Source: Leucoraja erinacea (Eukaryota). Taken from it: 64,000 bases of DNA. Both the position numbers and the translations under genes were made by a program. Below, one piece after another: positions 3,375 through 50,598 of this stretch. The stretch covers positions 5,518,001 to 5,582,000 of the forward strand of contig NC_073389.1 in the NCBI RefSeq assembly GCF_028641065.1, given 5' to 3'. The notes under the pieces were generated by a model that was not told where the DNA came from, searched no databases, and saw only the letters and a program-made list of their open reading frames with translations. The stretch's first letter is position 1; the number at the start of each line of letters is the position of its first letter.

Positions 3375-6300
3375 CAACCAAATAGAAAACCAGGCGCATG
3401 GGCTTACGGTGATGGGAAAAGCTTTAACAAGAACCTGAGGGACAACCTTTTCACACACAAGGTGTCGGGGTTTATGGAACGAGCTGCCGGAGGAGGTAGT
3501 TGAGGCAGGTACTGTCACACCATTTAAGACATTTGGACAGGTACATGGATAGGAAAGGTTTAGAGGGATATGGGCCAAGCGCTTGTCACTCATCACCCAC
3601 TAAATCACCCTCTGTCTGCTTCTGGTGAGTTGAGGTTGGATCCAGTCACCAACCTGCTCTGAACTCACAGGTCCTAACCAGCCTGGCATGTGGAGCAGCT
3701 CACAGTTACTGAAGTCCTTGTAAACCGCATCCACCACTCTGCCCTCGTCAATATCGATGGTCATTGGCGGTTGTGGCCGTGGGTTTGTGCTGCACACATG
3801 CTCCAGGGTCAGTCTACTGCCATGACTGCACTCTGGCAACTCTCTGATTACAAGTAGCCCGGGAAACATGCAGAGATGTAACACAGAGGGCCCAGTCCTG
3901 CCCTCACGCACGTTTTGTGATGGCTTGTGGTCGGCAGGGCTGCCACACATTGACGGCAATCACCAAGTCACAGAGTCACACAGCACGGAAACAGGCCTTT
4001 CGACCCAACTCATCCATGCCGACCAATATACCCCATCTACATTAGTCCCACCAGCCTGCGTTTGGCCCATATCCCTCTAAACCTTTCCTATCCATGTACC
4101 TGTCAAAGTGTATTTTAAATATTGTTATGGTACTTGCCTCAATGACCTCCTCTGGCAACTCGTTCCATTCTCCCACCACCCTCTGTATGAAAAAGTTGCT
4201 CCTCAGATTCCTATTAAATCTTTCCCCCTTCGCATTAAACCTATGTCTCTTAGTTCTTGGTTCCCTCCCCTGGGTACAAGACTGTGTGCATTCACCCTAT
4301 TTATTCCCCTTTATACCCCTCTATAAGATCACTTCTCAGCCTCCTGCATCCGATGCTGCTGCCTTCTCTGCGGACGTGCCGTTGGAGATGATGGTGCAGA
4401 GAGGAAGGTTCCATTGCGCAAATTGGTGACAAACACATAGCCAGAGGAGTGTGGGGCAGAAGACAGGGGGCCGGCAGCACACTGCGCACTGTCTCTCCCT
4501 CGGATGGGGTCACTTTGTGATACACAGTTCTGTGCACGCCACATCCATGGTTAGTATTCTTGCACTATGACTACCACTTCACACAGAGGGTGGTGGGTAT
4601 ATGGAACGAGCTGTCAGGCGAGGTCATTGAGGCAGGTACCAAAACAACAATTAAAAGACATTTGGACAGGGATAGGAAAGATCCAGAAGGATATGGTCTG
4701 CCGCAGGGTTCGGTGCTGGGCCCGTTACTGTTTGTCATCTACATCAATGATTTGGTTGTAACATAGAACATAGAAAATAGGTGCAGGGGTAGGCCATTCG
4801 GCCCTTCGAGGCTGCACCGCCATTCAATATGATCATGGCTGATCATCCAACTCAGTATCCCGTACCTGCCTTCTCTCCATACCCCCTGATCCCCTTAGCC
4901 AGAAGGGCCACATCTAACTCCCTCTTAAATACAGCCAAGGAACTGGCCTCAACTACCTTCTGTGGCAGAGAATTCCACAGATTCACCACTCTCTGTGTGA
5001 AAAATTGTATGAGAACATACATGATAAGATTAGCAAGTTTGCAAATGATACAACAGTTAGTGGTTTTACAGATAGTGAAGATGGTTGTGAACAATTGCAG
5101 CAGGTTCTTGATCGATTGGCCAGGTGGGTGGAGGAATGGTTGATGGAATCTAATATAGAGAAGTGTGTGGTGTTGCATTTTGGGAAGTCTAACGTGGGCA
5201 GGACCTACACAGTGAATGGTCGGGCTCTGGGGAGTGTTGTAGAGCAGAGGGATCTAGGAGCATAGGTGCATGGTTCCTTTAAGGTGGAGCCACAGATAGA
5301 TGAGGTGGTCAAAATGGCTTTTGGTACATTAGTGTATTGTGTATCCATCAGTGTATTGAGTATAGAAGTTGGGAGGCCATGTTGCAGTTGTATAAGACGT
5401 TGGTGAGGCCGCATTTAGAGTATTGTGTTCAGTTCTGGGCACCATGTTATAGGAAAGATGTAGTCAAGCTGGAAAGGGTACAGAGAAGATTCATGAGGAT
5501 GCTGCCAGGACTAGAGGGTGTAAGCTACAGGGAGAGGTTGAGTAGGCTAGGTCTCTATTCATTGGAGCACAGGATGATGAGGGGTGATCTTATAGAGGTG
5601 TACATAACCATGAGAGGAATGGATTGGGTAGTCTCTTGCCCAGAGTAGGTGGATCGATGACCAGAGGATATAGGTTTAAGGTGAAGGGGAAAAGATTTAA
5701 GACAAATCTGAGAGGTAAACGTTTCATACAAAGGGTGGTGGGTGCATGGCACAAGCTGCCAGAGCGGGGTAGTTGAGGCTGGGACTATCCCAATGTTTAA
5801 GAAAGTTAGACAGGTACATGGATAGGACAGGTTTGGAGGGATATGGATCAAACGTGGGCAGGTGGGACTAGTATAGGTGGGACATGTGGGTTGTTGTGGG
5901 CCGAAGGGCCTGTTTCCATGCTGTATCACTGTACGACGATGATATGAATCTAACGCAAGCAGGTGGGACTAGTGTGGATGGGGCACCATGGTCAGCATGG
6001 GCATGTTGGGTCGAAGGGCCTGTGTCTGTGATGTGTGACTCTATGACTATTTCACCAGTGAGAAAGTAAAGAGCACATGATGGTACATGGCAGGAAGTTG
6101 TTTACAGCTCTATAGGACTTTAGTTCGGCCACATTTGGAGTATTACGTGCAGTTCTGGTCGCCCCATTACAGGGGGGATGTGGAGGTTTGGAGAGAATGT
6201 ATAGAATGTTGACCAGAATAACACCTGCATTGGTTGGGATTAGCTACAGGGAGAGGTCGCTCTGGTGAATTGTTTTCTCTGGATTGCCCGGAGGTTTCGA

Positions 6301-6570
6301 GGAGCCCTGATACAAGTCTAGAACATTATGAGAGGCAGAGTTCGGGTAGACAGTCAGAACCTTTTTTCCCAGCATTGAAAAATCAAATATTAGTGGGCGT
6401 GGCTTTAAAGTGAAAGGGGCAAAGTTTAAAGGAGATTTGTGAGGCAGGTTTTTCACACAGGTGGGTGCCTGGAACTGATGACTGGGGGGCTGTGGTTGAG
6501 AAAGATATGTTAGAGGCATTTTAAAGGCCTGTACTTGTACTGTTGTATGTTCTATGTTGTATGATCTATG
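3375..6570. mobile_element. Patchwork of CR1 LINE fragments in both orientations
   Basis: ORFs with GLPQGSVLGPLLFVIYINDL, ISKFANDT, LYKTLVRPHLEYCVQFWAP and FFTQRVVNLWNSLP; several 3' UTRs. Small unique islands at about 3760-3960 and 4345-4575. Confidence 0.9.
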
Positions 6571-6702
6571 TTGTATGTTCCAGCTGTTCCCTCAACATGG
6601 GGCCAGATCACTGATGTCCAGATAACGCAAGCGTGGCCACTGACCAGCTTCCTGTCCACACAGGATGTGTGTTGGAGTTATCTCCACACTGATCTCCACA
6701 CT

Positions 6703-7763
6703 CAGGGCCGGCCTTAAGCCGATTGGACAGATTGCTCCCAATTGGGCCCCGCGAGTAAGGGGGCCCCGGCGCCAGAGTAATCTACTCTCGACTCGGGTAG
6801 ATCTACCCCGGGTGGAGGGGGGAGAGAGGGGCAGAGAGCGCGTAGAGGGGTGGAGGGGGAAGAAAGGGGTAGACGGGGAGGGGAGTGTGAGGGGGAATGG
6901 AGAACGGGGAGCGGGGGAGGTGGGTCATTCGCTCACGGCAGCGCCCCCACCCCTCCAGTCGCCGTGCTTCACGCACACAGCCCCGGCTCCACCCCTCTCT
7001 CTCCCCGGGGAGACGCGGTGAACAATACAAGGAGGGCCGGGCTGGGGGGGTTGGAGCAACGTTTACAAACCTCGTCCTCAGCTCACACCCGTCCGCCCGG
7101 ACCCCGCATCCGCTCCTGCTGTCGGCTCTCTCCTTCCCTTTCTCTCCTTCTCTCCTTCCCTCCCTCCCTTCTCTCTTTCCCTCCCTCCTTCCTCTCTCTT
7201 TTCCCTTCTCTCATTTGCTCCATCCCTTCTTTCTTTCTCTCCTTTCCTCCCTCCCTTCTCTCCTTCCCTCCCTCCCTTCTCTCCTTCCCTCCCACACACA
7301 CATAAAGCACAGACAACTAACACACACAACTATGTTAGGATGGGGTAGAAGCCCAAAGGGTAGGATGGGGCTGAAACACAAAATGTAATGGTTTTTCACC
7401 AATGGTTATTGGTTTTCCAGGATCTATTTAATTAAATTACTTCTTTTTTTTCATTTTACAGTAATTAAAACACGAGGTATTGTAACTATGTACTTTTCAG
7501 AGGCGATCTATACATTTTGTTTGTTACTTGTAAGCTTACATGTATGCAATTATAAATTAAAATGCAGCTTAGATCTGTTTGGTCCATTAAGTCGCAGGCA
7601 CTTTTTAAGCGCACATTTTGATGACTTTCCATTCTACCATAGAGATATAACGTCTATAATAGACTTTATTTATATTTCTATGAATCTACAGACCTTGGCT
7701 GGGAACCTGGGGCTCACCAAAATAGTTCCCAATTGTGCCCCGCACCTCCTAAGGCCGGCCCGG
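6703..7763. mobile_element. Non-autonomous hAT-like DNA transposon
   Basis: 14-bp TIRs CAGGGCCGGCCTTA (6703) and TAAGGCCGGCCCGG (7750-7763), 13/14 match; subterminal repeat CCCAATTG(G/T)GCCCCGC at both ends; internal CT-rich tract. No TSD found. Confidence 0.75.
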
Positions 7764-8900: not shown

Positions 8901-11900
8901 TATATACTATTATGGAACATTTTGTAATGTAAACTGGACTGTAATGTAAATTGTTGCATTTGTTCATTAATAAATAAGTAGAAATATCAGAATAGTAGAT
9001 TGTACTTACATTTATGTATTGGCCGATCATCGTACTACATATAGCAATATTTGCAAACTGTATACTTATTATTATTGGCGGATCATTGTATGTATATAGT
9101 ACATGTAACAAGATATGCAAAGTTGTAAACTATACACTATTATTATTCTCAATAAATTTATGAAAAATCTGATTATTTTTTTAATTTACCAAAATATATA
9201 TTTGTTATACCTATCTTTATTTGACTGAGTTACTGATTAGTATCCTGGCAAAACAGAGTATCCAACGCCGAGATCCTGTCTCGCGCTGGTCTTCCCAGTA
9301 TGTACACTCTACTCAGGCAGCGGAGACTCCGGTGGCTGGGCCCTGTCCACCGCATGGAGGATGGGCGTATTCGCTGACATCTCAAAACGGGGAAGAGAAA
9401 AATGATCCGACATCTCAAAACAGGGAAGAGAAACTGTTGAACACAGCAGCAGACAAGCAGGCCGGGCTGAAAGGAACGCAGCAACTTCAACAGTTGGTCT
9501 CTTCAGCCATAAGCAACGCTGCTCCAGCCAAGGTTTGGAGCAAGCTGGCAACAACTAGGATGCATCACCCACGGTCAGTCATGACTGAAAGGGGGCCTAC
9601 AAACTGATACAATGTGTCTGTAACCATCATACCCAGTGCTATATTTAAGAGGGAGTTAGATGTGGCCCTTGTGGCTAAAGAAAGTAGGTACAGGATACTG
9701 AGTTGGATGATCATATTGAATGGCGGTGCAGGCTCGAAGGGCCAGATGGCCTACTCCTGCACCTATTTTCTATGTTTCTATGTTTCTATATAGGCACAAA
9801 ATGGCCCTGAAATTTACCATATTACAAAAAATTTATCATGAGGGGCATATGGCCCCTGTGTTCTCTTTAACTGAGCCTAGGGTGGCTCAGTGTGGCCTCA
9901 CCAGCGCCTTGTACAGCTGCAACATTAGGTCCCGACTCCTAAACTCCACAGCCTGCCCTGAAGACATCCAGCTCATCACATTCACTGCCGCATCCAACCC
10001 TCGCCATTGGCAGGAGCTGTCAACTTACACAGAGGTCCCTCTCCACATCTACACCGCTCTGACCCTCTGCCATCTATACCCCGAGCGCCCTCTCCATGGC
10101 CTCATGCTAGTGCCAGGAAATGTCTAATGAAACAGAAACATGGAATGATTGAGAAAGTAATGGAAGGTGAAACATAAAAGCACCCACCAGACAGACATCT
10201 GTTAACAAATTTTTTACATTGAAATTTGTGATAAACATTGCCCAATATGTACAGTCTGAACGTGTTCGAATTGTGTAGAATATTTAAATTTCACATCAAT
10301 GACATTATGATACATGGGTCTACTAAATAATAAATAATGCGTAACCTATATAAAAAATAGCCCCCTCTTCACACTGTCAGAAACCTCAAGACCCGGTTCC
10401 AAATATGTCCATCACAGGTAGATACGACTTGTTTGAAGATCTCTCATTTACTCTGGTGTGAGCTCCATCACTTGTGCTCTTATTAGCTTCGCCATTGTTA
10501 CGTCTCTCATGTGGATGAGGACAAGAGGTGATTGGAGATATAAACTCCTCTTACCTACGAGTGGAAACTCCAGGACCAGTCGTTGCATCGATGCTCGGGC
10601 AGACAAGTATGTCAGACACACTCTCGTGTGCAACTGCTCGTTCTTCTGAAGATTCCTTCAATCTCGCTGAAGGTCTGGTTCTGAAGCGAGTTTGCAAGTT
10701 GCATAAACACATACATGTGCGAAAGCAGGGTTTTTTGCTTTGAGAGTGTGTGGGTGGGAGGGAGGCAGTGAAGCCTGTGCACTTGTGACACCACAGAACT
10801 TGACTTCCTTCCTCCAGGATTTCACTCGGACGATTGCAAAGATATCTCAGTTTCAATCTGCATACCACTGGGTTGGTAGCTGCCCAAGCGAAATATGAGT
10901 CCAGTTTGCATGTGCATGTGCATCTAGCAATGGTGGAGGCCCACGACAGAAAGGTAAGTATGGGAATGGGAATGGGAAGGGGTTAGTGGTTGGCAGAAGA
11001 TTAAATCATGCCTTTGTCGTGTCTGAAATCCTGAGCTGTTTGCACGATGTGTTGCAGGAAGCTTCCCTGGGTAGATTTTGAGATTGCTGGAAAGTAGGTC
11101 AGATGGATAACTACTGTGTGATAATATATTTTAAATGTTCATGAGTGATCTCTGTCTGCAAAACTTGCTGATCTTTTAGTTTAGTTTCGAGATACAGGGC
11201 GGAAACGGGCCTTGCGGCCTACCTAGTCCGTGCTGACCAGCGATCCCTGCACTTTAACACTACCCTACACACAGTAGGAACAATTTACAATTTTACCGAA
11301 GCCAATTAATCTTTTAACATGTAGGTTTTTGGAATGTGATATGAAACTGGAGCACCCGTGGAAAACCCACGCAGGTCACGTGGAGAACGTACAAACTCCA
11401 TATAGACATTGGGCAGCACGGTGGCGCAGCGGTAGAGTTGCTGCATTACATCGCTTACAGCTCCAGAGACACGGGTTCGATCCCGACAACGGGTGCCGTC
11501 TGCACGGAGTTTGTACGTTCTCCCCGTGACCTGCGTGGGTTTCCTCCAAGATCTTTGGTTTCCTCCAACACTCCAAAGACGTACAGGTTTGTAGGTTAAT
11601 TGGTCTGGTATAATTGTAAATTGTCCCTAGTGTGTGTAGGATAGTGTCAATGTGCGGGGATCGCTGGTCGGCACGGACTCGGTGGGCCGAAGGGCCTGTT
11701 TCCGCGCTGTATCTCTAAACTAAACTAAACTAAACTAATCAAGCACCCATAGTCAGGATGGAACCCAGGTCTCTGCCGACGTAAGGCAGTAGCTTTACCA
11801 CTAAACCCATGTTGATAAAGTCCCACAAACTTTCCCCTGTGTGGTTCAAAAGTCCTCTTCAATTGTCCATTAACGTATGATCAGCAAAGGTTGAGTGTGC

Positions 11901-12689
11901 CCTTGAGCACTACTGAAAATCCTCAGCAAGGAAGTGTTTACTCATCAGCCAGCCACTGTTAGTAGAGGGCTTTATGTCCAGCACTCTCCACAAAAGTGTT
12001 GCACACATGACGGGTGCCAGCAGATAAGTGAAGTGCCAATCCACCCCTTGATGGTTCTCACAGCTGTATTCCTGCAGCTCGCTTCAACTCCAGTGAGAAG
12101 AAGCAATCCTGCAATAACCGCAGGCTAAACTGGCATCTCAACCCAAGAACCCACCATGGGTTCCCCACAGGCTCCATGGTCCATAATGGAACCTTCATTC
12201 TCAGCAGAGAGTCTCTGGGACAATGTTAATGTTGCAATCACACACTCTACTTTCTCCAGTATCTTTCAACACTCCAGCAACACAACATTCCTGCTGCACA
12301 TCGCTTCATTGCCAGAACACATGGTTTGTGTGGAACCTACAGGAGACCCGTTCTTCACTGAGAGAGTGAAGTCATTGCCAAGACAGGAATGATCTCCTGA
12401 ATGACCTGAAGAGGAGATGGGTCATGAAGAGAAGGGATAGAAGGTCACCTATCCATGTTGTCCAGAGATGCTGCCTGACCCGCTGAGTTACTCCAGCACT
12501 TTGTGTCTATCTTGAATGGCCTTCTGCTTTTGCAAAAAGCATTCAGGAGAAGCGCGAATGGTGGACGTAGCCCAGACCATCACACAAACCAACCTCCCTT
12601 CTATTAACTCCATTTATACATCATGCTGCTTCACCAAGGCCAGCAGCATAATCAAAGATAAGACACCCTGGCCACTCCCTCTTAGTCAT

Positions 12690-13258
12690 AGAGACATAGA
12701 GTGATACAGAGTAGATACAGGCCCCTCGACCCAACTTGCCCACACTGGCCAACATGTCCCAGCTATACTAGTCCCACCAGCCCGTGTTTGGCCCATATCC
12801 CTCCTATCCATGTACCTGTCCAACTATTTCTTAAATGGTAGGATAGTTCCTGCCTCAACTATCTCCTCTGGCAGCTTGTTCCATACACCCACCACTCTTT
12901 GTGTGAAAAAATGATCCCTCAGATTCCTATTAAATCTTTTCCCCTTCACCTTAAACCTATTTCCTCTTATCCTAGACTTTGTTTATCTACCTGATCTATT
13001 CCTCTCATGATTTTATACACCATTATAAGATCGCCCCTCGTCCTCCTGCACTTCAAGGAATAGAGTCCCAGCCTACTCAACCTCTCCCTGTAGCTCACAC
13101 CCTCTAGTCCTGGCAACATCCTTGTAAATCTTCTCTGTGCCCTTTCCAGCTTGACAACATCTTTCCTGTAACATGGTGCCCAGAACTGAACACAATACTC
13201 TAAATGCAATACTCACCATGTGCAACTGCAACATGACCTCCCAACTTCTATACTCAAC
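12690..13258 (-). mobile_element. CR1 LINE 3' fragment
   Basis: ORF 12967..13209 HLEYCVQFWAPCYRKDVVKLERAQRRFTRMLPGL plus 3' UTR. Confidence 0.9.
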
Positions 13259-30276: not shown

Positions 30277-31304
30277 GTAGGCCGTCAACATGTCTGTGTG
30301 CTTCATTCTCAACACTTCAAGTTTAGTTGAACTAAACGTAACGATATGATAAAACGTGAGAAATAAGGGCGGCACAGTGGCGCAGCGGTAGAGCTGCTGT
30401 CTCACAACTCCACAGACCCAGGTTCGATTCTGGTCTCGGGTGCTGCCTGTACGGAATTTGCACATTCTCCTGTGGGATTTCTCCGGTTTCCTCCTCCATC
30501 CCAAAGATGTGCAGGTTTGTAGGTTAATCGGCTTCTGTACGTCGTCCCTAGTGTGTAGGGTAGTGCTAGTGTATGGGCGGATTCGATGGGCCGAAGGGCC
30601 TGTTTTCCGGCCCTATCTCCAAACTAAACTACAGAGGGTAGAAGTCCTGAGCAATAATGTTAGTATGTGGTTGAGTCTTTGCTGCTCCTCCAGAACAGAA
30701 GTGTTTGTATGATAATACACATTGGTTTGCCGAACCGACCCCTGCGAACAGTTAAAAGCCAGATATCCACATTCTTAGCGTTTGAATTTGTAACAGTGTT
30801 GATATTATAGTTTTTTAGTTCTACAGTTTACAGACACAAGAAGGGGTGACGTAACGTGCAGCGCAAGATTTCAGATTTGTGAACAATTTAAATAAATTGC
30901 TCAAGAAATAATGCATCAACTTTTTAGGTGAGGTGATTTTTGACATCACGGCATAAATCTCTATTGGAGGAGATCAGAATCGTTTTCGAGGAGATCAGAA
31001 TCGCAGACCAGCATCACACACACACATACACACAAATACATCCACATCCAAGATCAGAGTTTTATAAGTATAAAGGTAAAGATATATGTGCCCCTCCTTG
31101 TCTACAAAACAAGCACTGCTCCAGAATACTCAGCTATGTTGAAGAAAGTGAAACTAGGTACAATCTGGGAAGCATAAAAAATATCTGATCCACCCTCTCT
31201 CCTGAACCATTCTGGCTCCTGATCGACTATTGCTCTTAATCCACCATAACTCCTGATCCACTCCTGGTCCTAATCCACTCTCACTCCTTGTGTAGGAAAG
31301 AACT

Positions 31305-31408
31305 TCTTCTTGCGTAAGGCCAACTTGTTCTTATTTGATTGTGCACGCCGGGTTGATTGCATTCGGTGAAACAGGGCGGACCTTGTGGAGGTTGCAATCT
31401 TCCACCGC
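31305..31408 (-). mobile_element. Short retroposon with HDV-like ribozyme head, degenerate copy
   Basis: 11-bp TSD AGGA(A/G)AGAACT at 31294-31304 and 31409-31419; (AAG)n tail; homologous to 37351-37486 with an internal deletion. Confidence 0.8.
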
Positions 31409-32389
31409 AGGAGAGAACTGCAGATACTGGTTTAAATCGAAGGTAAACACAAAATGCTGCAGTAACTCAGCAGGACAGGCAGCATCTTTGGAGAGAAGGA
31501 ATGGGTGACGTTTCGGATCGAAACCCTTCTGAAGCCTGAATTCCTTCTCCAATTCCTTCTCTCCAGACATGCTGTCTGTCCTGCTGAGTTACTCCAGCAT
31601 TTTGTGTGTCCCCTCACTCCTGATCGCTCTCACTCCTGATCGGCTCCCGATCCTTTGCTCCTCATCCACTCTGGCTCAACCATATCACCCCCTATCACTT
31701 CCCAACTCTGCATTTCCCTTCCAGGAGTGGGATGTGAAGGGTCCAGGTGAGATTCACATTTATAGCTGGTGGCCACCAAACCTGGCTAGACCGGCCCTTT
31801 GCAACCACTTCCTTATTCTCCCACAGATCTCCCCCTGGTTAGTGAAGATTCACTTCAGCAATCTTCAATGCAAAGGTGATTCAATTTAATTATTTACTTT
31901 AATTATCACTGAATAAAGCTTTCCTTTATTCCCACTAAGACAAGGGAGAACATTTGGAGACTGTCGTTCAAATGGAGATCCATAAACACTAACATCAGTT
32001 TGCAGTCTTTTTCACTGGGTGAATGGATGGTATTAAATAAACAAATTATTGTAAATGGTAACAAAAAATTCTTGTGTTCTTCCATCAGGCAATAATGGCC
32101 TTACATTTAATTACATTCTCAGCTTATATTTTTGTATTTCAAAACCATTTATTGAGGAACAACTAACCATCTTCTGTGTATTTAAAAAAATAATAATAAT
32201 AATTGTCAAGCTGGAACACAAACTGCCCAAGTTTTGTTTTGAGGGAACGCTCAGTCATTTAAGTAGTTTTGCTGCATTTATTCTTGAATTTTAGAATGTT
32301 TTATTTTTTATTTAAATTCTCTACTATTGTTGGATCTTTTATGTAAATTCTCTGATCCGTGCAAAGAATGTCTTTTGTTCAAATTTCAG

Positions 32390-37045: not shown

Positions 37046-37350
37046 AAGAAGTCTTTAACTAATACCATTATGTATAAAAATCAGTTTTTATGATTGAACA
37101 TTTAAAAGACCATTTAAAACCTATTGACCAAAAAATTAAATGCTTCCTTGAAGTCTACAAGAAGCAAGCAGCAAACAAGTGGTTGTGATTAACTTGGGTC
37201 CTTACCAAGACAGTGCTATCTTCATATCTGGAGGTTTATGTAAAAGTTCATAGTAATTCTATTCGTACTAACAAAATTTTGTGGACTTTGGGTACTTTGG
37301 TTAATTTTGGGTGATCTGTATTAAAAAATTATCAGCAAGATCTAGATGCT

Positions 37351-37486
37351 TCTTCTAGCGTATGGCGTGCACAGCCTAAAGTTGTAAGACAACTTGTTCT
37401 ATTTGATCATGTTTGATTGTGCACGCCGGGTTAATTGCATTCGTTGAAACAGGGCGGACCACGTGAAGGTTGCAATCTCCCACCCC
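37351..37486 (-). mobile_element. Short retroposon with HDV-like ribozyme head, best copy
   Basis: Perfect 11-bp TSD ATCTAGATGCT at 37340-37350 and 37487-37497; (AAG)n tail; no tRNA A/B boxes seen. Confidence 0.85.
37433..37486 (-). ncRNA. Minimal HDV/CPEB3-like self-cleaving ribozyme (predicted)
   Basis: GGGGUGG-GA-GAUUGCA-ACC-UUCACGU-GGU-CCGCCCU-GU-UUCAA-CGAA-UGCAAUU: 7-bp P1 with G1.U wobble, 7-bp P2, 3-bp P3, L3 UUCACGU, J4/2 CGAA, P4 reduced to a short loop. Confidence 0.8.
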
Positions 37487-39286
37487 ATCTAGATGCTAAT
37501 ATACCAATATTATTAGGCATATTTGAAGAATGTCACAATTAAATACAGATTATATATAGCAACAAATATCAATTATAAATACTTGAGAACTTTAAGTATA
37601 AGCAAATTATGTAACGTGGACTTTAAAATTCCCAAGAACAAATTTAAACATTTTTTAATAAATAATTACTGACTAACAATGCACGACAGGATTGAATCCC
37701 ACCAATTCCCCACATATCCCCCACGCTTCTAACGTGCAAAATTATAGGCAACTTCCACCAATAATTTAAAAATTACTCTCCCATCTCCGAACACCAAAAG
37801 GCAGTGCCACAACAGTGCTAGCTTCCAAGTTGTGTGCAGGACATTACCTTTATCTTCTGACAAATCCCAAACTATAAGGGCCGGGCAATTTTTGAACTGT
37901 TTATGAAGTTACGATTTCTATTCCAAGCATTAAGAGATATTCTCTCAAGCTGGAGTGCTCACTGCTCTCTTGTAATCGGAATTGCAACTCTCATAATCAG
38001 TTTACTCTCTGCAGCTATTTAACAGAATATTTAGCAGCAATATTGCATATCACAGTCTTCACACACTGAGTATCCTGGGAAGACTGATTAACAATACTGT
38101 TCAAATAGGCAGCGGATTGTGTACCTTAATGCTGAGTTCTTTCCGTGCTAACTCGATCTTGCTAAGCTCCCTTTGGAGAGCACTAATAGCAAGATAATTT
38201 TTCGTGTTGTGCCTGGGACCTTTGTTGTAAATCTGCAAGTCATTATAAGACAGTTTGAGACCGGCACATAGAGGGAATAATTATCACGTTATAACCAAGC
38301 ATATTCTTTTGCATTGGATATCTTGTCCACTGCTTTACTGCGTTACGTTTCAGCAATATTATCAGTTTCACCAGGTCAGAAAATTGCCAGCCCATCAACC
38401 TTCAACTTTTTTTCTGTTGTTTTCCCTGTCCCCGTCTCCGTCTGCGCCGAGGCCTAATGGCGGAGCTTGCGGCCTCGGAGCTGTGGTGGCGGCAGTGGCA
38501 GCAGAAACCCCGACTTTACCATCACCCGGTGGGGTCACAACATCTGGAGCCTGGATCGCCTCGGCGCAGAGGGAGAACAAAGAGGGAAGAGACAGAGACT
38601 TTAAGATTTTGCCTTCCACCACAGTGAGGAGGTGTTTGGTGAACTCACTGTGGTGGATGTTAAATTTGTGTTGATTGTGTGTTTTTGTCATTTTTTATTA
38701 TATGTATGACTGCAGGGAAACAAAATTTCATTCAGACCAAAAGGTCTGAATGACAATAAACAAATCTAATCTAATCTAATCTAACCTTCCAGTTCGTCAC
38801 GGTGGTTTTTGACAAAACTCTGGAAATGTCTGAAATATCAATCTCCCATTTCAGACATGGCAATGACATCTGTAATTTTGCATGTGGTTTTTTATCATAA
38901 TTTTCTGTACATCTTCCCCTTGTTAAAAGACCCAGACCCAGGCTTTTTAATTCATTTTTCCCCCCCAGTCATTTCCTTCAATCATTCCAATTACCATCTG
39001 CTGGTAGTCATAATACCGTAAACACACAAGATACAAATATAGAACAGTGCGTTTCAGTAATTCCTTCTGTCAAGGGAAGGCAATTTAATACTGAGGTTGT
39101 ACCCAATTTATTCTAACAATCCGCTTGCTATATGGTTACAAACCTCCACACCATCCCATAATAGGAATAACTTCTCAAACGTGAGGTGAAGAATAAGAAA
39201 GGTGAAAGAAAAGATGTACGGCATATTTCTGCATGTAAAATAAACATCCAGTGTTATGCCTGATATTCTATGGAATATTTTTTTTT

Positions 39287-40485
39287 TATCTTTGCGGAGC
39301 TCTCGTCCAACTACAGCCTCCCAAACTCCCACCTTTTTCGTTTTTTCCAGATTAGGGATTTTGTGAAGAAGACACTCCCCCATTTCCCAAATTGCCCTCC
39401 TGAAACCCTGACCGATACCATCTTAGCTCTAGATCCCAACCGGAAGAAATGCATCTCTGTTTTGTATAACTTGTTAGGGTCGGTTATATTGAAACCTCAT
39501 ACCTCATTAAAAGCTGCGTGGGAGGGTGAGCTGAATACGAAACTAACAGACCAGCAATAGGACTCTGCCTTGGATTTGATCCATTCATCCTCCATATGTG
39601 CCCGTCATGGCCTAATCCAACGCAAAGTCCTTCACAAAGTCCACTACACAAATGCAAGATTATCTAGAATTTACCCTGCTGTTAGGGACACCTGCAACAG
39701 ATGTAATCAATCCCCTGCCAACCATAGCCATATGTTTTGGTCTTGCCCTAAGCTAGCAGCCTTTTGGAGGAGTGCTTTCGGCTTGATAAGCAGAGCCTAC
39801 GGCCAGACTATTCCTCCAAACCCACTGTCAGCCATTTTCGGTACCCCTCCCAACACCAACCTCTCTGTTGCGGTGAAACGGGTTCTAGCTTTTACAACCT
39901 TGTTAGCCCGGAGACTGATCTTGCTTAACTGGAGGCTTACCTGTCCCCCGACACATGCCCGCTGGATTAAGGAGGTGCTTTACAATTTAAAGCTTGAAAA
40001 ACTTAGGTTCTCTCTCAAAAGCTCTACCAAGACATTCCTAGACACATGGAACCCTTTCTTGGAACTTGTTAACTCTCTCAACTTGTCCCTGGACTCGGAA
40101 GAGGACTGAGTGCTCTCCACCATTGTTCTACTGCACTACTGCAGCTGCTCTCCCCTTAACCCCACCCCCCCCTCCCAACACTTATTTATTTAATTACTTA
40201 CTTATTTACTGTTATTAGTGACCCCTTTTTTTTTTTCTTTAGTACTTTTTGTTTCGTTAATCTTACCATATTTGTGTGGATGTGTACGTATGTGAGTGTT
40301 GTTTGTCCCCGTTTGGTTCCGACCTGATTCGGGTGGGTTGAAGGTGGGTAAGGGTAAGGGCTTTGAGGGTCGCTTACATACTGTTGCACAATTATGCCTT
40401 GACTGTCACTGTCTGTTATCATAGTACGTATGCAAATTGCTGTGAAATTCAAATAAAAAGATTTAAATAAAAAAATTAGAAAAAA
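39287..40485 (+). mobile_element. L1 LINE 3' fragment
   Basis: ORFs 39270..39560 and 39570..40109 (FRFFQIRDF, CNRC..HMFWSCPKL..FW, LEKLRF..W.PFL), 3' UTR, AATAAA and A-rich tail. Confidence 0.9.
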
Positions 40486-44099: not shown

Positions 44100-46510
44100 A
44101 TTAGTGATAGGAGAATAATGAGGTCTACTCTGCCATTCAATCATGGCTGATCAATCTCTCCCTCCTAACCCCATTCTCCTGCCTTCTCCCCATAACCCCT
44201 GATGCCCATACTAATCAAGAATCTATCTGTCTCTGCCTTTAAAATATCAATTGACGACCTCCTCAACCTTCTGTGGCAAAGAATTCCACAGATTCACCAC
44301 CCTGACTAAAGACCCTTAACCTTATCTCATTCCTAAAGGAGCGAACTTTTATTCTGAGGTTATGACCACTGATCCAAGACTCTCCCAGCAGTGGAAAAAT
44401 CCTCTCCACATCCACTCTATCCAGGTCTTTCACTGTTCCGTGAGTTTCAATGAGGTCTCTCCTCATCCTTCTAAACTCCAGCGAGTACATGCCCAGCGCC
44501 ATCAAATGCTCACTCATAGAAAGATAGAAACATAGAAAATAGGTGCAAGAGTAGGCCATTCGGCCCTTCGAGCCTGCACCGCTATTCAATATGATCATGG
44601 CTGATCATCCAACACAGTATCCTGTACCTGCCTTCTCTCCATACCCCCTAAACCCTTTAGCCACAAGGGCCACATCTAACTCCCTCTTAAATATAGCCAA
44701 CGAACTGGCCTCAACTACCTTCTGTGGCAGAGAATTCCACAGATTCACCACTCTCTATGTAAAAAATGTTTTCCTCATCTCGGTCCTAAAAGATTTCCCC
44801 CTTATCTTTAAACTGTGACCCCTTGTTCTGGACTTCCCCAACATTGGAAACAATCTTCCTGCATCTAGCCTGTCCAACCCCTTAAGAATTTTGTAAGTTT
44901 CTATAAGATCCCCCTTCAATCGTCTAAATTCTAGCGGGTACAAACCAGTTCTATCCAGTCTTTCTTCATATGAAAGTCCTGACATCCCAGGAATCAGTCT
45001 GGTGAACCTTCTCTGTACTCCCTCTATGGCAAGAATGTCTTTCCTCAGATTGGGAGACCAAAACTGTACGAAATACTCCAGGTGTGGTCTCACCAAGACC
45101 CTGTACAACTGCAGCAGAACCTCCCTGCTCCTATACTCAAATCCTTTTGCTATGAATGCTAACACACCATTCGCCTTCTTCACTGCCTGCTGCACCTGCA
45201 TGCCTACTTTGCCTGGGATAATTCTCAGAAACCTCCTCTGGGCCCTCTCCAGCACATCCTCCTCAGATATGGGGCCCAGAATTACTCACAATATTGCATA
45301 TGCAATCTGACCAGTGTCTTATAAAGCCTCAGCATTACAAGCTTAGTTGAGTTGTTCAGCTCAATGCGTGAAAGACAATTGGACAGGTACAGGGATAGGA
45401 ATGGTTTAGAGGGATGTGGGCCAAATGCAAGCGAACGGGACTAGCTCAGGAAGGCAATATGGTCGGAATGGATGAGATGGGCCGAATGGCCTGTGTCCGT
45501 GCTCATTGGTCAATGACAGTGGCAACGAGTTCCATTCTTACCAATGGAATCACAGAGCAGTGCCGGGTGCCACTGTGATCCCACAAGTGAATGCCCTGCA
45601 GTCTGTCTAGAATTGCCCTTGGACTTCAGCCCCTCTGCCTGGCTCTGGGGCTCTGTTTCCTCTCTGGGACACACAGGTTGGGATCACGGAAGCCTCCTCA
45701 TTCTCCCTCGTGAGGGTCTGCCTAGTCTGTGCTCGTTCGATGAGGTCCTGGTGCCACTCCTGGTGTCCAGCGTTAGGGCAGAGAAGGACATCAGGACCGT
45801 GGCTGTTCCTCTCACAGACGCAGAGGGCTGTTGTGTCTACAATTCCCACCACTGCTGAGGGACTAAGAATGTGTGAGAAGTTTCCATATGGTTTTTGTTT
45901 AGTATATATGTTTTATTCTGAATTAAGTTAATTTTAACAATATATTTAAAATTGCTGCAGCATTTGATGTTTCAGATAGCTGGCCGCTTGTTCATGAGTT
46001 CAAAGTGATAGGAGCTGAAGGGTCAGTGTGGGAATAAGGCCATATGGCCCATCATGTCTACTCCACCATTCAATCATGGCTGATCTATCTCTCCCTCCTA
46101 ACCCCATTCTCCTGCCTTCTCCCCCAAAAACTAATCAAAAGTCTATTTATCTCTGCCTGAAAAGTATCCATTAACTTGGCCTCCTCAGACTTCAGGAGCA
46201 ATGAATTATGCAGATTCACCACCCTCTGACTAAAGAAATTCCTCCTCATCTCCTTCTTAAAGGAACACCCTTTATTTCTGAGGCTGTGACCTCTAGTCCA
46301 AGACTCTCCCACTAGTGGAAACATCCTCTCCACATCCACTTTTTCAGAACCTTGCCCTATTCAGTGAGTTTCAATGAGATGAAACTCATAACTTATGTTC
46401 ATGTTCATAAGTGATAGGAGCAGATTTAGGCCATTCGGCCCATCACGTCAACTCCACCATTCCATCATGGCTGATCTATCTCTCCCCCTGCCTTCTCCCC
46501 ATAACCCCTG
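44100..46510. mobile_element. Cluster of CR1 3' fragments, mostly - strand; unique island about 45520-45980
   Basis: ORFs 44263..44598, 44755..45255 and 46085..46339 are CR1 ORF2 C-termini. Confidence 0.88.
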
Positions 46511-48494: not shown

Positions 48495-48995
48495 TTTGCT
48501 ATTGAGGGAGTGCAGCGTAGGTTCACAAGGTTAATTCCCAGGATGGCGGGACTGTCATATGCTGAGAGAATGGAGCAGCTGGGCTTGTACAGAAGGATGA
48601 GAGGATATCTCATTGAAACATTTAAGATTGTTAAGGGTTTGGACACGCTAGAGGCAGGAAACGTGTTCCCGATGTTGGGGGAGTCCAGAACCAGGGGCCA
48701 CAGTTTAAAAATAAGGGGTAATCCATTTAGAACGGAGACGAGGAAAGACTTTTTCTCACAGAGATTGGTGAATCTGTGGAATTCTCTGCCTCAGGGTGGT
48801 GGAGACCGGTTCTCTGGATGCTTTCAAGAGAGAGCTAGATAGGGCTCTTAAAAATAGCGGAGTCAGGGGATATGGGGAGAAGGCAGGAACGGGGTACTGA
48901 TTGGGGATGATCAGCCATGATCACATTGAATGGCGATGCTAACTCGAAGGGCCCAATGGCCTACTCCTGCACCTACTGTCTATTGTCCATTGTCT
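48495..48995 (+). mobile_element. CR1 LINE 3' fragment
   Basis: AIEGVQRRFTRLIP..RTRGHSLKI..FFSQRLVNLWNSLP plus 3' UTR. Confidence 0.9.
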
Positions 48996-50598
48996 AAGAC
49001 CAACCCTTATCTATCTGCGGCATGGTGGTGCAACGGTGGAGTTGCTGCCTTACAGCGGCAGAGACCCGGGTTTGATCGCGACTACGGGTGCTGTCTGTAC
49101 GTAGTTTGTACGCTCTCCCCGTGACCTGTGTGGCTTTTCTCCAAGATCTTCGGATTCCTTCCAAAGACGCACAGGGTTCTAGGCTAATTAGCTTGGTAAA
49201 ATTGTCGTGTATCATATGCGGGGATCGCGTCAGTACGGACTCGATGGGCCGAAGGGCCTGTTTCTGCGCTGTATCTCTAAACTAAACTAAACCAAAAAAA
49301 CTTAAAGTAAACTATCTGCACGAGGTGGTGGGAGGTACAATAACAACTTTTGATACGAACATGGATTGTATGGACATGGGCCAAACATGGGCATGTGGGA
49401 CTGCTGTGGATGGGGCAACATGGTCAGCATGAGCAGGTTCTGCTGAAGGGCCTGTTTCAGTGCAGTATGATTCTATGGCAATGTCAATAAATTGGTCAGA
49501 CTGATTGAAACTGCCATTTATTCTGAGCTGACACACAAGATGGATGCACTTTTCTCACCAGAACAATACAGGGAGCTGTAAACAAACGTGCGTTTAATTG
49601 TAAATTGGCCGTTACTTTGTGCAGAAGCTGCAGATTACAGGTGACGGTGAGGCCCAGATAATGTGCCCAGACGGCCCATCCTGGTGACATGATCTTTCAC
49701 ACACGCAGACAACGCCGCGCTTCATACTATATTTGGTTTCTCCTTTTCACACACTAGCTGTAAATAACATCTTGTTAACGTTTTGTGAAATTGTCATCCT
49801 TTGCTTGTCATTAGAAATAACGTCTCTCCTTGTTGTAGAAACCAGCTTTTGCCCAAAGTCTAGCTAATATTTAAAATGGGGAAGTACACAAAGTAACTGT
49901 ATTTAAATGTTACAATGCTTTTTCACAAGTTGAGTATAATGATAAAAATGTCTACTTTTTATGCCTGACCAAGTAGAATATAATTCATTGTATTTTTGCA
50001 TTTATTTTGTTTGTTTTACTGTTAAGTGAAGTTTCCATGACATTGATAGGTGGGATATCGAGTTCATCGATGACCCTTCTTTGAATTATAGCGAGAGAGT
50101 GTGACTATTTTGAAGTATAGCTTATTGCACTTGATATCACTTTTTTTAGCATGTGAAAAGACTGCAACATTTGATCACCAACATAGACATGTGTGAGGTT
50201 GTAACAGCGGTAATTGGATGCCCCAACTCTGCCATGGTGCCTGTTCCTTGAGTGTGGCCAGTTGCTTACAATGGACAACGTGAGAGTTAGTGGATGAGGG
50301 AGAGCGGGGAGGACAGACACATCCTCTCTGTAACGCTGCTTCTGTTGTTGCTGCAGTGGTGAGCACAGGGCGAGTTTGCTGTCAATGCCACAGTTGTACA
50401 GCAGGGGGCAGTAGGATGAATGTTGTTGTCTGTAGGGGTGTCTCATTGATAACTGCTCTGAAACATCTGCCCATTCACTTTGGCCCTTGTGTGCATCTGA
50501 AGGGATAAACCGTGTGAGAATAAGGTCTGTGCCAGAACCTTCTCCAGGCCTACGCCCCAATACCATAACTTTAGAAGAAGTTTGATAGAGAGCCGATA

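Follow-up and report, generated by a model that had tools for sequence, protein, structure and literature searches.

In the present work, we identified a 136-nt retroposon of the little skate Leucoraja erinacea that begins exactly at the predicted cut site of a stripped-down HDV/CPEB3-type self-cleaving RNA fold, ends in an (AAG)n tail, and belongs to a family present tens of thousands of times in this cartilaginous-fish genome. It is best read as a SIDE-like (short internally deleted element), LINE-dependent retroposon that most likely trims its own 5' end out of host transcripts, with self-cleavage inferred from sequence and fold alone; we give this reading a probability of roughly 0.75. The element lies on the minus strand of a 64,000-nt window, i.e. 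the whole stretch of DNA that was analysed (assembly GCF_028641065.1, contig NC_073389.1, positions 5,518,001 to 5,582,000), and all coordinates below refer to this window. An earlier sequence-only reading had described the element with its 11-bp target-site duplication, the CPEB3-like head with hardly any P4, the 3' stem-loop and the tail, and this description was confirmed, the minus strand reading exactly as written there. The parts are as follows.

37487-37497, minus strand: upstream copy of the target-site duplication (AGCATCTAGAT), identical to 37340-37350.
37433-37486, minus strand: 54-nt P4-less HDV/CPEB3-type predicted ribozyme fold with G1 at 37486; P1 37480-37486/37451-37457, P2 37471-37477/37433-37439, P3 37468-37470/37458-37460, L3 (UUCACGU) 37461-37467, GU joiner (J1/4) 37449-37450, a 5-nt linker standing in for P4 37444-37448, and the J4/2 joiner CGAA 37440-37443 with the putative catalytic C (C44) at 37443.
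37428-37432, minus strand: 5-nt linker (AACCC) between the fold and the 3' domain.
37364-37427, minus strand: 3' domain, a 10-bp stem (GGCGTGCACA/TGTGCACGCC) enclosing a 7-bp hairpin at 37379-37395, by inference the recognition structure for a partner reverse transcriptase.
37349-37363, minus strand: 3'-terminal ATACGCT followed by the (AAG)n tail (AGAAGAAG), whose last AG overlaps the duplication.
37340-37350, minus strand: downstream copy of the target-site duplication.
31305-31408, minus strand: second, decayed copy of the same family, starting with GCGGTGG directly after its own duplication (AGTTCT[C/T]TCCT at 31409-31419 and 31294-31304), with mutations in L3 and P1, lacking the 3' half of the stem and ending in an AAGAAGAAG tail.

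The element proper spans 37351-37486, yet since the first two duplicated bases, AG, could equally be the last bases of the tail, this boundary is uncertain by 2 nt. Its head has the potential for a nested double pseudoknot, with a P1 of 7 bp including the G1.U36 wobble, a P2 of 7 bp, a P3 of 3 bp, and C22-G37 available for P1.1. The positions that matter in HDV-type ribozymes are all present, namely the G1.U wobble, U20, C22 and G25 in L3, G37 for P1.1 and the C in CGAA, their roles being those established for HDV and CPEB3 structures. The ViennaRNA minimum-energy fold contained P1 and P3, and the centroid contained P2. The 3' domain folded at -23.7 kcal/mol (z -3.46), and 0 of 200 shuffles folded as well. 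A P4 helix, on the other hand, is absent, with only the 5-nt linker in its place (UUCAA here, UUCGA in the family consensus). Besides, no Rfam model reached its gathering score in a search of the whole window; in a 351-nt search the best was a weak but full-length match to HDV-F-prausnitzii over exactly 37486-37433 (15.7 bits, E 1.5, against a gathering score of 44), and there was no RF00622 hit at E of 10 or less.

Could the resemblance to a ribozyme be mere chance, in an ordinary SINE or DNA transposon? A loose HDV descriptor is indeed not significant on its own, as it gave about 8 hits per shuffled window. However, a strict descriptor (this L3, P1 of 7 bp with G1.U, P3, GU, CGAA and a P2 of 6 bp or more) gave 0 hits in 50 Mb of shuffled window sequence and found only this site in the window. 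The fold starts at the first base of the element in both copies, and a similar fold heads a LINE elsewhere (see below). There are no terminal inverted repeats and the duplications vary in sequence. We found no tRNA and no Pol III A or B box at 2 or fewer mismatches, and hence neither an internal Pol III promoter nor a small-RNA-derived head as in classical SINEs. We therefore consider chance resemblance very unlikely.

That the element is a family was apparent from Logan contigs of DNA runs from three organisms, in which 11,212-16,109 contigs lay on the element and summed depth was 0.5-3.6 million inside 37336-37491, against about 20-60 in the flanks. Loose ends with random continuation clustered at 37486/37487/37488 (454-676 contigs per run), whereas those at 37349/37351 continued as (AAG)n (TTCTTCTT on the plus strand), and no other preferred 5' end was listed. 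The family consensus turns G10.U54 into G10-C54 and the linker into UUCGA, so that the copy in the window differs from it at two ribozyme positions (A42 and U54 here); besides, its insertion is shared by three organisms, which makes it an old copy. One might argue that this is not a self-propagating family but a set of repeatedly generated, internally deleted or dead-on-arrival fragments of a full-length ribozyme-headed LINE, and the related LINE described below does produce different internally deleted copies. Yet, the 11-16 thousand contigs per run share one and the same junction between the ribozyme and the 3' domain, most are 90-99% like this copy, and only one common indel variant was seen, while independent deletions would give many different junctions. 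This alternative thus appears improbable.

A further possibility is that the 5' fold is a catalytically dead relic of a LINE ribozyme, or serves another role such as a protein-binding or 5'-end-recognition structure for the LINE machinery, in which case the uniform 5' end would stem from transcription starting at G1 or from some other processing. In line with this, P4 is reduced to a linker, which could make the ribozyme slow or inactive, no Rfam hit reached threshold, and contigs of a probable RNA run passed through the G1 site into unrelated upstream sequence (27 loose ends at 37486), implying that uncleaved copies exist or that DNA is present in that run; all runs were assembled contigs, which cannot show RNA 5' ends. 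Against it, the known important positions are retained, the family consensus makes P2 better rather than worse, no Pol III boxes are present, and an upstream promoter cannot be carried along by retroposition, yet tens of thousands of copies share the same first base. Moreover, P4-less, "minimal" HDV-like ribozymes are an accepted subclass in which P4 is dispensable (PMC10879173). We regard the relic scenario as unlikely, although only two copies were readable, which do not suffice to gauge covariation or a preferential conservation of P1-P3 within the family.

Indirect support for a LINE partner came from a pattern scan of metagenomes, which returned 88 loci, all from one LINE family; two scans of viral contigs were empty. 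The samples of this metagenome LINE are JGI24158J21664, JGI24159J19872, JGI24021J15306, JGI24022J15233 and Ga0210059. As the scan pattern was taken from the skate sequence, identity of these loci at those 21 bases is by construction, and a covariance model built from them would be circular as a test of the skate copy. The metagenome copies begin at G1 of a fold with the same helix lengths and the same L3, and their P1, P2 and P3 differ from the skate's by paired changes (U5.G32 versus A5-U32, A17-U29 versus G17-C29, and a P2 that is wholly different but 7 bp in both). MAFFT aligned the skate CGAA and P2' to the P4 of the metagenome ribozymes, which we took as a sequence coincidence, and helices were compared by position instead. 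The Rfam CPEB3 model is the best match of the metagenome ribozymes (28.6-30 bits), and Exo_endo_phos_2 and RVT_1 lie downstream. A full-length copy (contig L025, positions 4280-7540) is 3,261 nt long and ends in (AAG)n, while copies of 335 nt and about 555 nt are internally deleted. Its last 20 nt match those of the skate element at 16 of 20 positions. In contrast to the skate element, this LINE has a full P4, a CUAA/CCAA joiner instead of CGAA, and a different host. Its size, single APE+RT reading frame and trimer-repeat tail are RTE-like, though this is a likeness in architecture only, as a search of the Atlas gave only generic reverse-transcriptase clusters. Within the skate window no partner LINE was found: its two LINE fragments are CR1/L2-like and neither ends in an (AAG)n tail, the only other AAG tail belongs to the second copy, and weak matches of element positions 70-90 turned out to be 3' ends of an unrelated CR1-type repeat.

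Collectively, we propose that the element is one old copy of a very abundant, promoterless, non-autonomous non-LTR retroposon, consisting of the 5' ribozyme of a LINE joined almost directly to a LINE-type 3' recognition hairpin and an (AAG)n tail. In this view, a source copy would be transcribed as part of a longer host or read-through RNA, and the 54-nt double-pseudoknot fold would cleave just 5' of G1, such that the upstream host RNA is discarded and every cDNA starts at the same base. The reverse transcriptase of an APE-type LINE with an (AAG)n tail, of RTE-like architecture, would then recognise the 3' stem-loop and tail, prime on a nicked target with AG microhomology and copy the RNA to its 5' end, creating a 9-12 bp duplication and a new copy that again carries a complete ribozyme. 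Our data show the anatomy, the duplications, the tail, the size of the family, the uniform 5' end at G1, and the related ribozyme-headed LINE with its own short deletion derivatives in another organism, whereas self-cleavage, the identity of the skate partner LINE and the way the RNA 3' end is made are inferences. The interpretation offered by the sequence-only reading, a promoterless SINE-like family that cuts itself out of host transcripts and borrows a LINE, possibly of the RTE type, is accordingly supported only in part: the retroposon family, its common 5' end and the lack of a Pol III promoter held, and borrowing of an RTE-like LINE gained indirect support. Its further claim, that the element lies sense to a CIP2A intron and could have cleaved that pre-mRNA, was not confirmed, as Pfam and Atlas searches of the same-strand ORFs gave only generic coiled-coil signals, and a neighbouring entry of that reading itself calls the gene a disrupted pseudogene.

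HDV-like ribozymes cleave at the 5' junction of R2, R4, L1Tc and RTE elements (Ruminski et al. 2011, as cited in PMC3774820; PMC3185411; PMC3383444), and NARTc is a non-autonomous partner that carries the same head as its LINE. The hosts in these cases are insects, nematodes and trypanosomes, and in L1Tc/NARTc the head also acts as an internal promoter. The R2 SIDEs and R2/R1 hybrid SIDEs of Drosophila (Eickbush & Eickbush 2012, PMC3414825) likewise join a 5' HDV-like ribozyme to the 3' end that a LINE reverse transcriptase recognises, their 5' end being defined by self-cleavage from a co-transcript; however, they are rare, specific to rDNA sites, hundreds of nt long and endowed with a full ribozyme including P4, whereas the skate family is dispersed in about 10^4-10^5 copies in a vertebrate, is only 136 nt long and has a P4-less predicted ribozyme. 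Minimal HDV-like and theta ribozymes (Riccitelli et al. 2014, as cited in PMC10879173) share the double-pseudoknot core without the P4 domain, yet come from metagenomes or phages and lie next to tRNAs, while the present fold heads a eukaryotic retroposon and has CPEB3-type loops. With the mammalian CPEB3 ribozyme (Rfam RF00622), the skate fold has in common a P1 of 7 bp starting GGGG with a G1.U wobble, a 15-nt spacing from GGGG to L3, a P3 of 3 bp, and L3, GU and CGAA identical to the Rfam consensus. It resembles this family but is not a member, since CPEB3 is a single-copy intronic ribozyme of mammals with a 7-bp P4, whereas the skate element is multicopy, lacks P4 and differs in its P1, P2 and P3 sequences. 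Our literature searches, within the library searched, found neither a published description in skates or sharks nor a vertebrate high-copy short family of this kind.

A tentative and rather doubtful extension is that the "mammal-only" CPEB3 ribozyme is a domesticated head of this lineage of ribozyme-headed, (AAG)n-tailed LINEs and their short derivatives, which would have been active in early jawed vertebrates and expanded to about 10^4-10^5 copies in skates. If so, such elements scatter potentially active self-cleaving sites through thousands of vertebrate introns.

Ribozyme-processed retrotransposons are not known as a dominant short repeat of a vertebrate genome. At 136 nt, the element is close to the smallest retroposon that could work, with a 54-nt, putatively self-trimming head, a presumed reverse-transcriptase handle and a tail. 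It shows that a Pol III promoter is not needed for SINE-like success, and places P4-less HDV-type ribozymes, as predicted from sequence, in a eukaryotic nuclear genome. Its CPEB3-type loops also offer a concrete, testable origin for the mammalian CPEB3 ribozyme. If the copies are active, tens of thousands of cleavage sites lying in the sense orientation inside introns would be a genome-wide influence on pre-mRNA integrity.

The observation made by the sequence-only reading held: the minus strand of 37340-37497 reads exactly as that reading had described it. An 11-bp direct repeat (AGCATCTAGAT) at 37487-37497 and 37340-37350 brackets a 136-nt element at 37351-37486. However, the first two repeated bases, AG, could equally be the last bases of the (AAG) tail, so the 3' boundary is uncertain by 2 nt. 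Numbered from G1 at 37486 on the minus strand, the parts of the predicted ribozyme fold are as follows.

1-7 with 30-36: P1, 7 bp, closing with the G1.U36 wobble
between P1 and P2: J1/2, GA
10-16 with 48-54: P2, 7 bp
17-19 with 27-29: P3
the loop of P3: L3, UUCACGU
after P1: J1/4, GU
where P4 would be: a 5-nt linker, UUCAA
before the 3' strand of P2: J4/2, CGAA

The ViennaRNA minimum-energy structure of the whole element contained P1 and P3, while the centroid structure contained P2. The 3' domain, a 10-bp stem around a 7-bp hairpin, folded at -23.7 kcal/mol (z -3.46), and none of 200 shuffles folded as well.

We next asked whether the fold could have arisen by chance. A permissive HDV descriptor hit about 8 times per shuffled window, so that the bare fold would prove nothing. 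In contrast, a strict descriptor requiring this L3, a P1 of 7 bp with G1.U, P3, GU, CGAA and a P2 of at least 6 bp gave no hit in 50 Mb of shuffled sequence and only this site in the window. The Rfam models were less supportive, as none reached its gathering score; the only weak match was HDV-F-prausnitzii, at 15.7 bits against a threshold of 44 (E 1.5), albeit aligned full-length over exactly 37486-37433.

A second copy of the family (copy B) lies on the same strand at 31305-31408. It starts with GCGGTGG directly after its own 11-bp duplication (AGTTCT[C/T]TCCT) and ends in AAGAAGAAG, yet it is decayed: G2, in P1, is C, three changes fall in L3, and the 3' half of the stem is deleted. Directly upstream of copy B, at 31410-31520 (minus strand), lies another interspersed repeat (containing ...GATGCTGCCTGTCCTGCTGAGTTACTGCAGCATTTTGTG...), a common elasmobranch SINE-like sequence, at whose edge copy B inserted.

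To gauge the size of the family, Logan contigs of three DNA runs (X1, X3 and X5, from three organisms coded A, B and C) and of one probable RNA run were aligned to 37050-37800 at 80% likeness. Per DNA run, 11,212-16,109 contigs lay on the stretch, and the summed depth was 0.5-3.6 million inside 37336-37491 against about 20-60 in the flanks, which implies roughly 10^4-10^5 copies, an order of magnitude rather than a count. At the 5' end, loose contig ends with random, AT-rich continuations clustered at 37486, 37487 and 37488 (179/196/79 contigs in X1, 184/209/89 in X3 and 296/259/121 in X5). At the 3' end, they clustered at 37349 and 37351, with a continuation reading TTCTTCTT on the plus strand, that is, more AAG units. 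The only other well-supported loose end (37408) was a 10-nt indel variant that copy B also has. The 5' end of the family is thus G1, give or take chance matches of the next one or two flank bases. Contig ends at 37487 were over-represented, matches extending one base past G1 more often than AT-rich flanks alone would predict, which suggests that T is common at -1. As both window copies carry T there (37487 and 31409), this hints at a target-site or junction preference for T at this position. Runs labelled with seven different organisms held words of the stretch, and contigs of organisms A, B and C bridged from the unique flank into the element, with 0 differences in organism B, which is probably the source, and about 6-8% difference in the flank of organism C. 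This particular insertion therefore predates their split.

In the contig alignments, where variants present at 10% or more were reported, the family majority differed from this copy at five positions:

A42 to G, a CpG site, which makes the linker UUCGA
U54 to C, which makes G10-C54 a Watson-Crick pair
C76 to U
U78 to A
U100 to C, in the hairpin loop

The consensus ribozyme is thus slightly better paired than this copy. As for the class of the element, we found no tRNA-like part, no A or B box at 2 or fewer mismatches and no terminal inverted repeats. With duplications of variable sequence and a microsatellite tail, this is a non-LTR retroposon without a Pol III head.

To look for relatives, metagenome contigs were scanned with a 21-base pattern (GGGG, 15 N, the L3 heptamer, 6 N, CCCTGT, 3-12 N, CGAA), the gap being kept short so that the mammalian CPEB3 sequence would not match; no contig that we took for human was met. 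The scan returned 88 loci from five JGI samples, all of one family. The CGAA of the pattern fell by luck in their P4 loop, whereas their real fold reads GGGGAGG / AA / GACAGAU / GCC / UUCACGU / GGC / CCUCCCU / GU / a 6-bp P4 / a C(U/C)AA joiner / AUCUGUC. While identity at the 21 pattern bases is by construction, several features were not imposed by the pattern. P1 positions 5-7, P3 and all of P2 pair in these sequences and, relative to the skate, differ by paired changes (U5.G32 versus A5-U32, A17-U29 versus G17-C29, and a P2 that is fully different but 7 bp in both). Similarity among 51 loci with different flanks begins at G1. Besides, the CPEB3 model of Rfam was their best match, at 28.6-30 bits against a gathering score of 35 (E about 3e-4), and an Exo_endo_phos_2 endonuclease lies at about +300 to +1000 and RVT_1 at about +1400 to +2000. 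The metagenome copies that define this LINE and its short forms (L numbers denote contigs) are listed below.

L025:4280-7540, minus strand: full-length copy of 3,261 nt, from G1 of a CPEB3-type ribozyme with a full P4 to a ...CTCAAACGACG(AAG)3 end with a duplication-like flank, encoding an APE endonuclease and a reverse transcriptase
L001, L028, L037, L067 and L087: further contigs with this LINE
L007: a second 3' end, which also stops at ...CTCAAACGAAAGAAG
L005:13122-13456, minus strand (the same locus as L057:986-1320): a 335-nt copy in which the first ~256 nt are joined directly to the last ~80 nt and the (AAG)n tail; it sits directly after a fragment of another copy's ribozyme
L027: a similar copy of about 555 nt from G1

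The short copies, in which the ribozyme and 5' part are joined to the 3' end and tail, are natural SIDE-type derivatives caught in another genome. The last 20 nt of the skate element and of this LINE match at 16 of 20 positions and both abut the tail, which is suggestive, although the stretch is short. The size of the LINE, its single APE+RT frame open from the 5' end and its trimer-repeat tail fit the RTE class as reportedly described (Malik & Eickbush 1998), a resemblance that rests on these traits alone; a comparison with the Atlas gave only generic reverse-transcriptase clusters. In a further metagenome contig, L016:12226-12420 gave a sub-threshold Rfam match to plant-type miRNA precursor models (MIR4208, 46 bits against a gathering score of 140), which is probably an inverted repeat and not a miRNA.

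No candidate partner LINE was found within the window. Its two LINE reverse-transcriptase fragments, at 14044-15418 and 16302-18221 (both minus strand), carry RVT_1 plus ALKBH8_N and are hence CR1/L2-like; an (ACTGAT)n-type repeat lies downstream at 16118-16143, neither fragment ends in an (AAG)n tail, and they are unrelated to the ribozyme element. Other repeats and ORFs in the window are the following.

4760-4900 (minus), 21290-21420 (minus), 44520-44680 (minus), 48850-49000 (plus) and 56900-57060 (minus): five copies of the 3' end of a CR1-type LINE or SINE, ending in a (TTCTATGT)n-like tail
24617-25297 (plus) and 57014-57862 (minus): ORFs with an Ig V-set domain and an Ig C1-set domain, consistent with the immune-receptor-like genes that other sequence-only notes report on this window
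39570-40106 (plus): an ORF with a zf-RVT domain (E 1.8e-5), probably another retroelement fragment, inside the region called CIP2A

The sequence-only reading had further placed the element in sense orientation in a CIP2A intron, which we could not confirm. ORFs on the minus strand between 38.1 and 43.6 kb look like coiled-coil exons, and the element does lie on the same strand as these, yet Pfam and the Atlas gave only generic coiled-coil signals and the probable RNA run had no depth on the flanks. A neighbouring sequence-only note moreover calls the gene a disrupted pseudogene. Overall, the earlier interpretation, namely a promoterless SINE-like family that cuts itself out of host transcripts and borrows a LINE, was partly supported.

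Taken together, the element is most likely a SIDE-like mini-retroposon that comprises a ribozyme head, a putative reverse-transcriptase handle and a tail. In this view, source copies would be transcribed within longer RNAs and the ribozyme would cut 5' of G1, which would explain a uniform first base without a portable promoter, while a LINE of the ribozyme-headed, (AAG)n-tailed kind would copy the RNA by target-primed reverse transcription, using AG microhomology. The anatomy of the element, the family with its fixed 5' end and the related LINE with its short derivatives were established from sequence, whereas cleavage, RNA 5' ends at G1 and a partner LINE in skate are inferred. In the probable RNA run, which like the others consisted of assembled contigs, 27 contigs continued upstream of G1, so uncleaved transcripts or DNA are present. 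The proposed mechanism matches known biology: HDV-like ribozymes cleave at the 5' junctions of R2, R4, L1Tc and RTE elements (PMC3774820), R2 SIDEs are ribozyme-plus-3'-end elements (PMC3414825), NARTc shares its head with L1Tc (PMC3383444), and P4-less minimal HDV-like ribozymes are a recognised subclass (PMC10879173).

In the literature searched, we found no paper describing HDV-like ribozyme retroposons in skates, sharks or other jawed vertebrates. Ribozyme-processed non-LTR elements and their SIDEs are already known as such, while the vertebrate host, the genome-wide abundance, the size of 136 nt, the P4-less core and the CPEB3-type loops of the present family are new relative to the literature searched.
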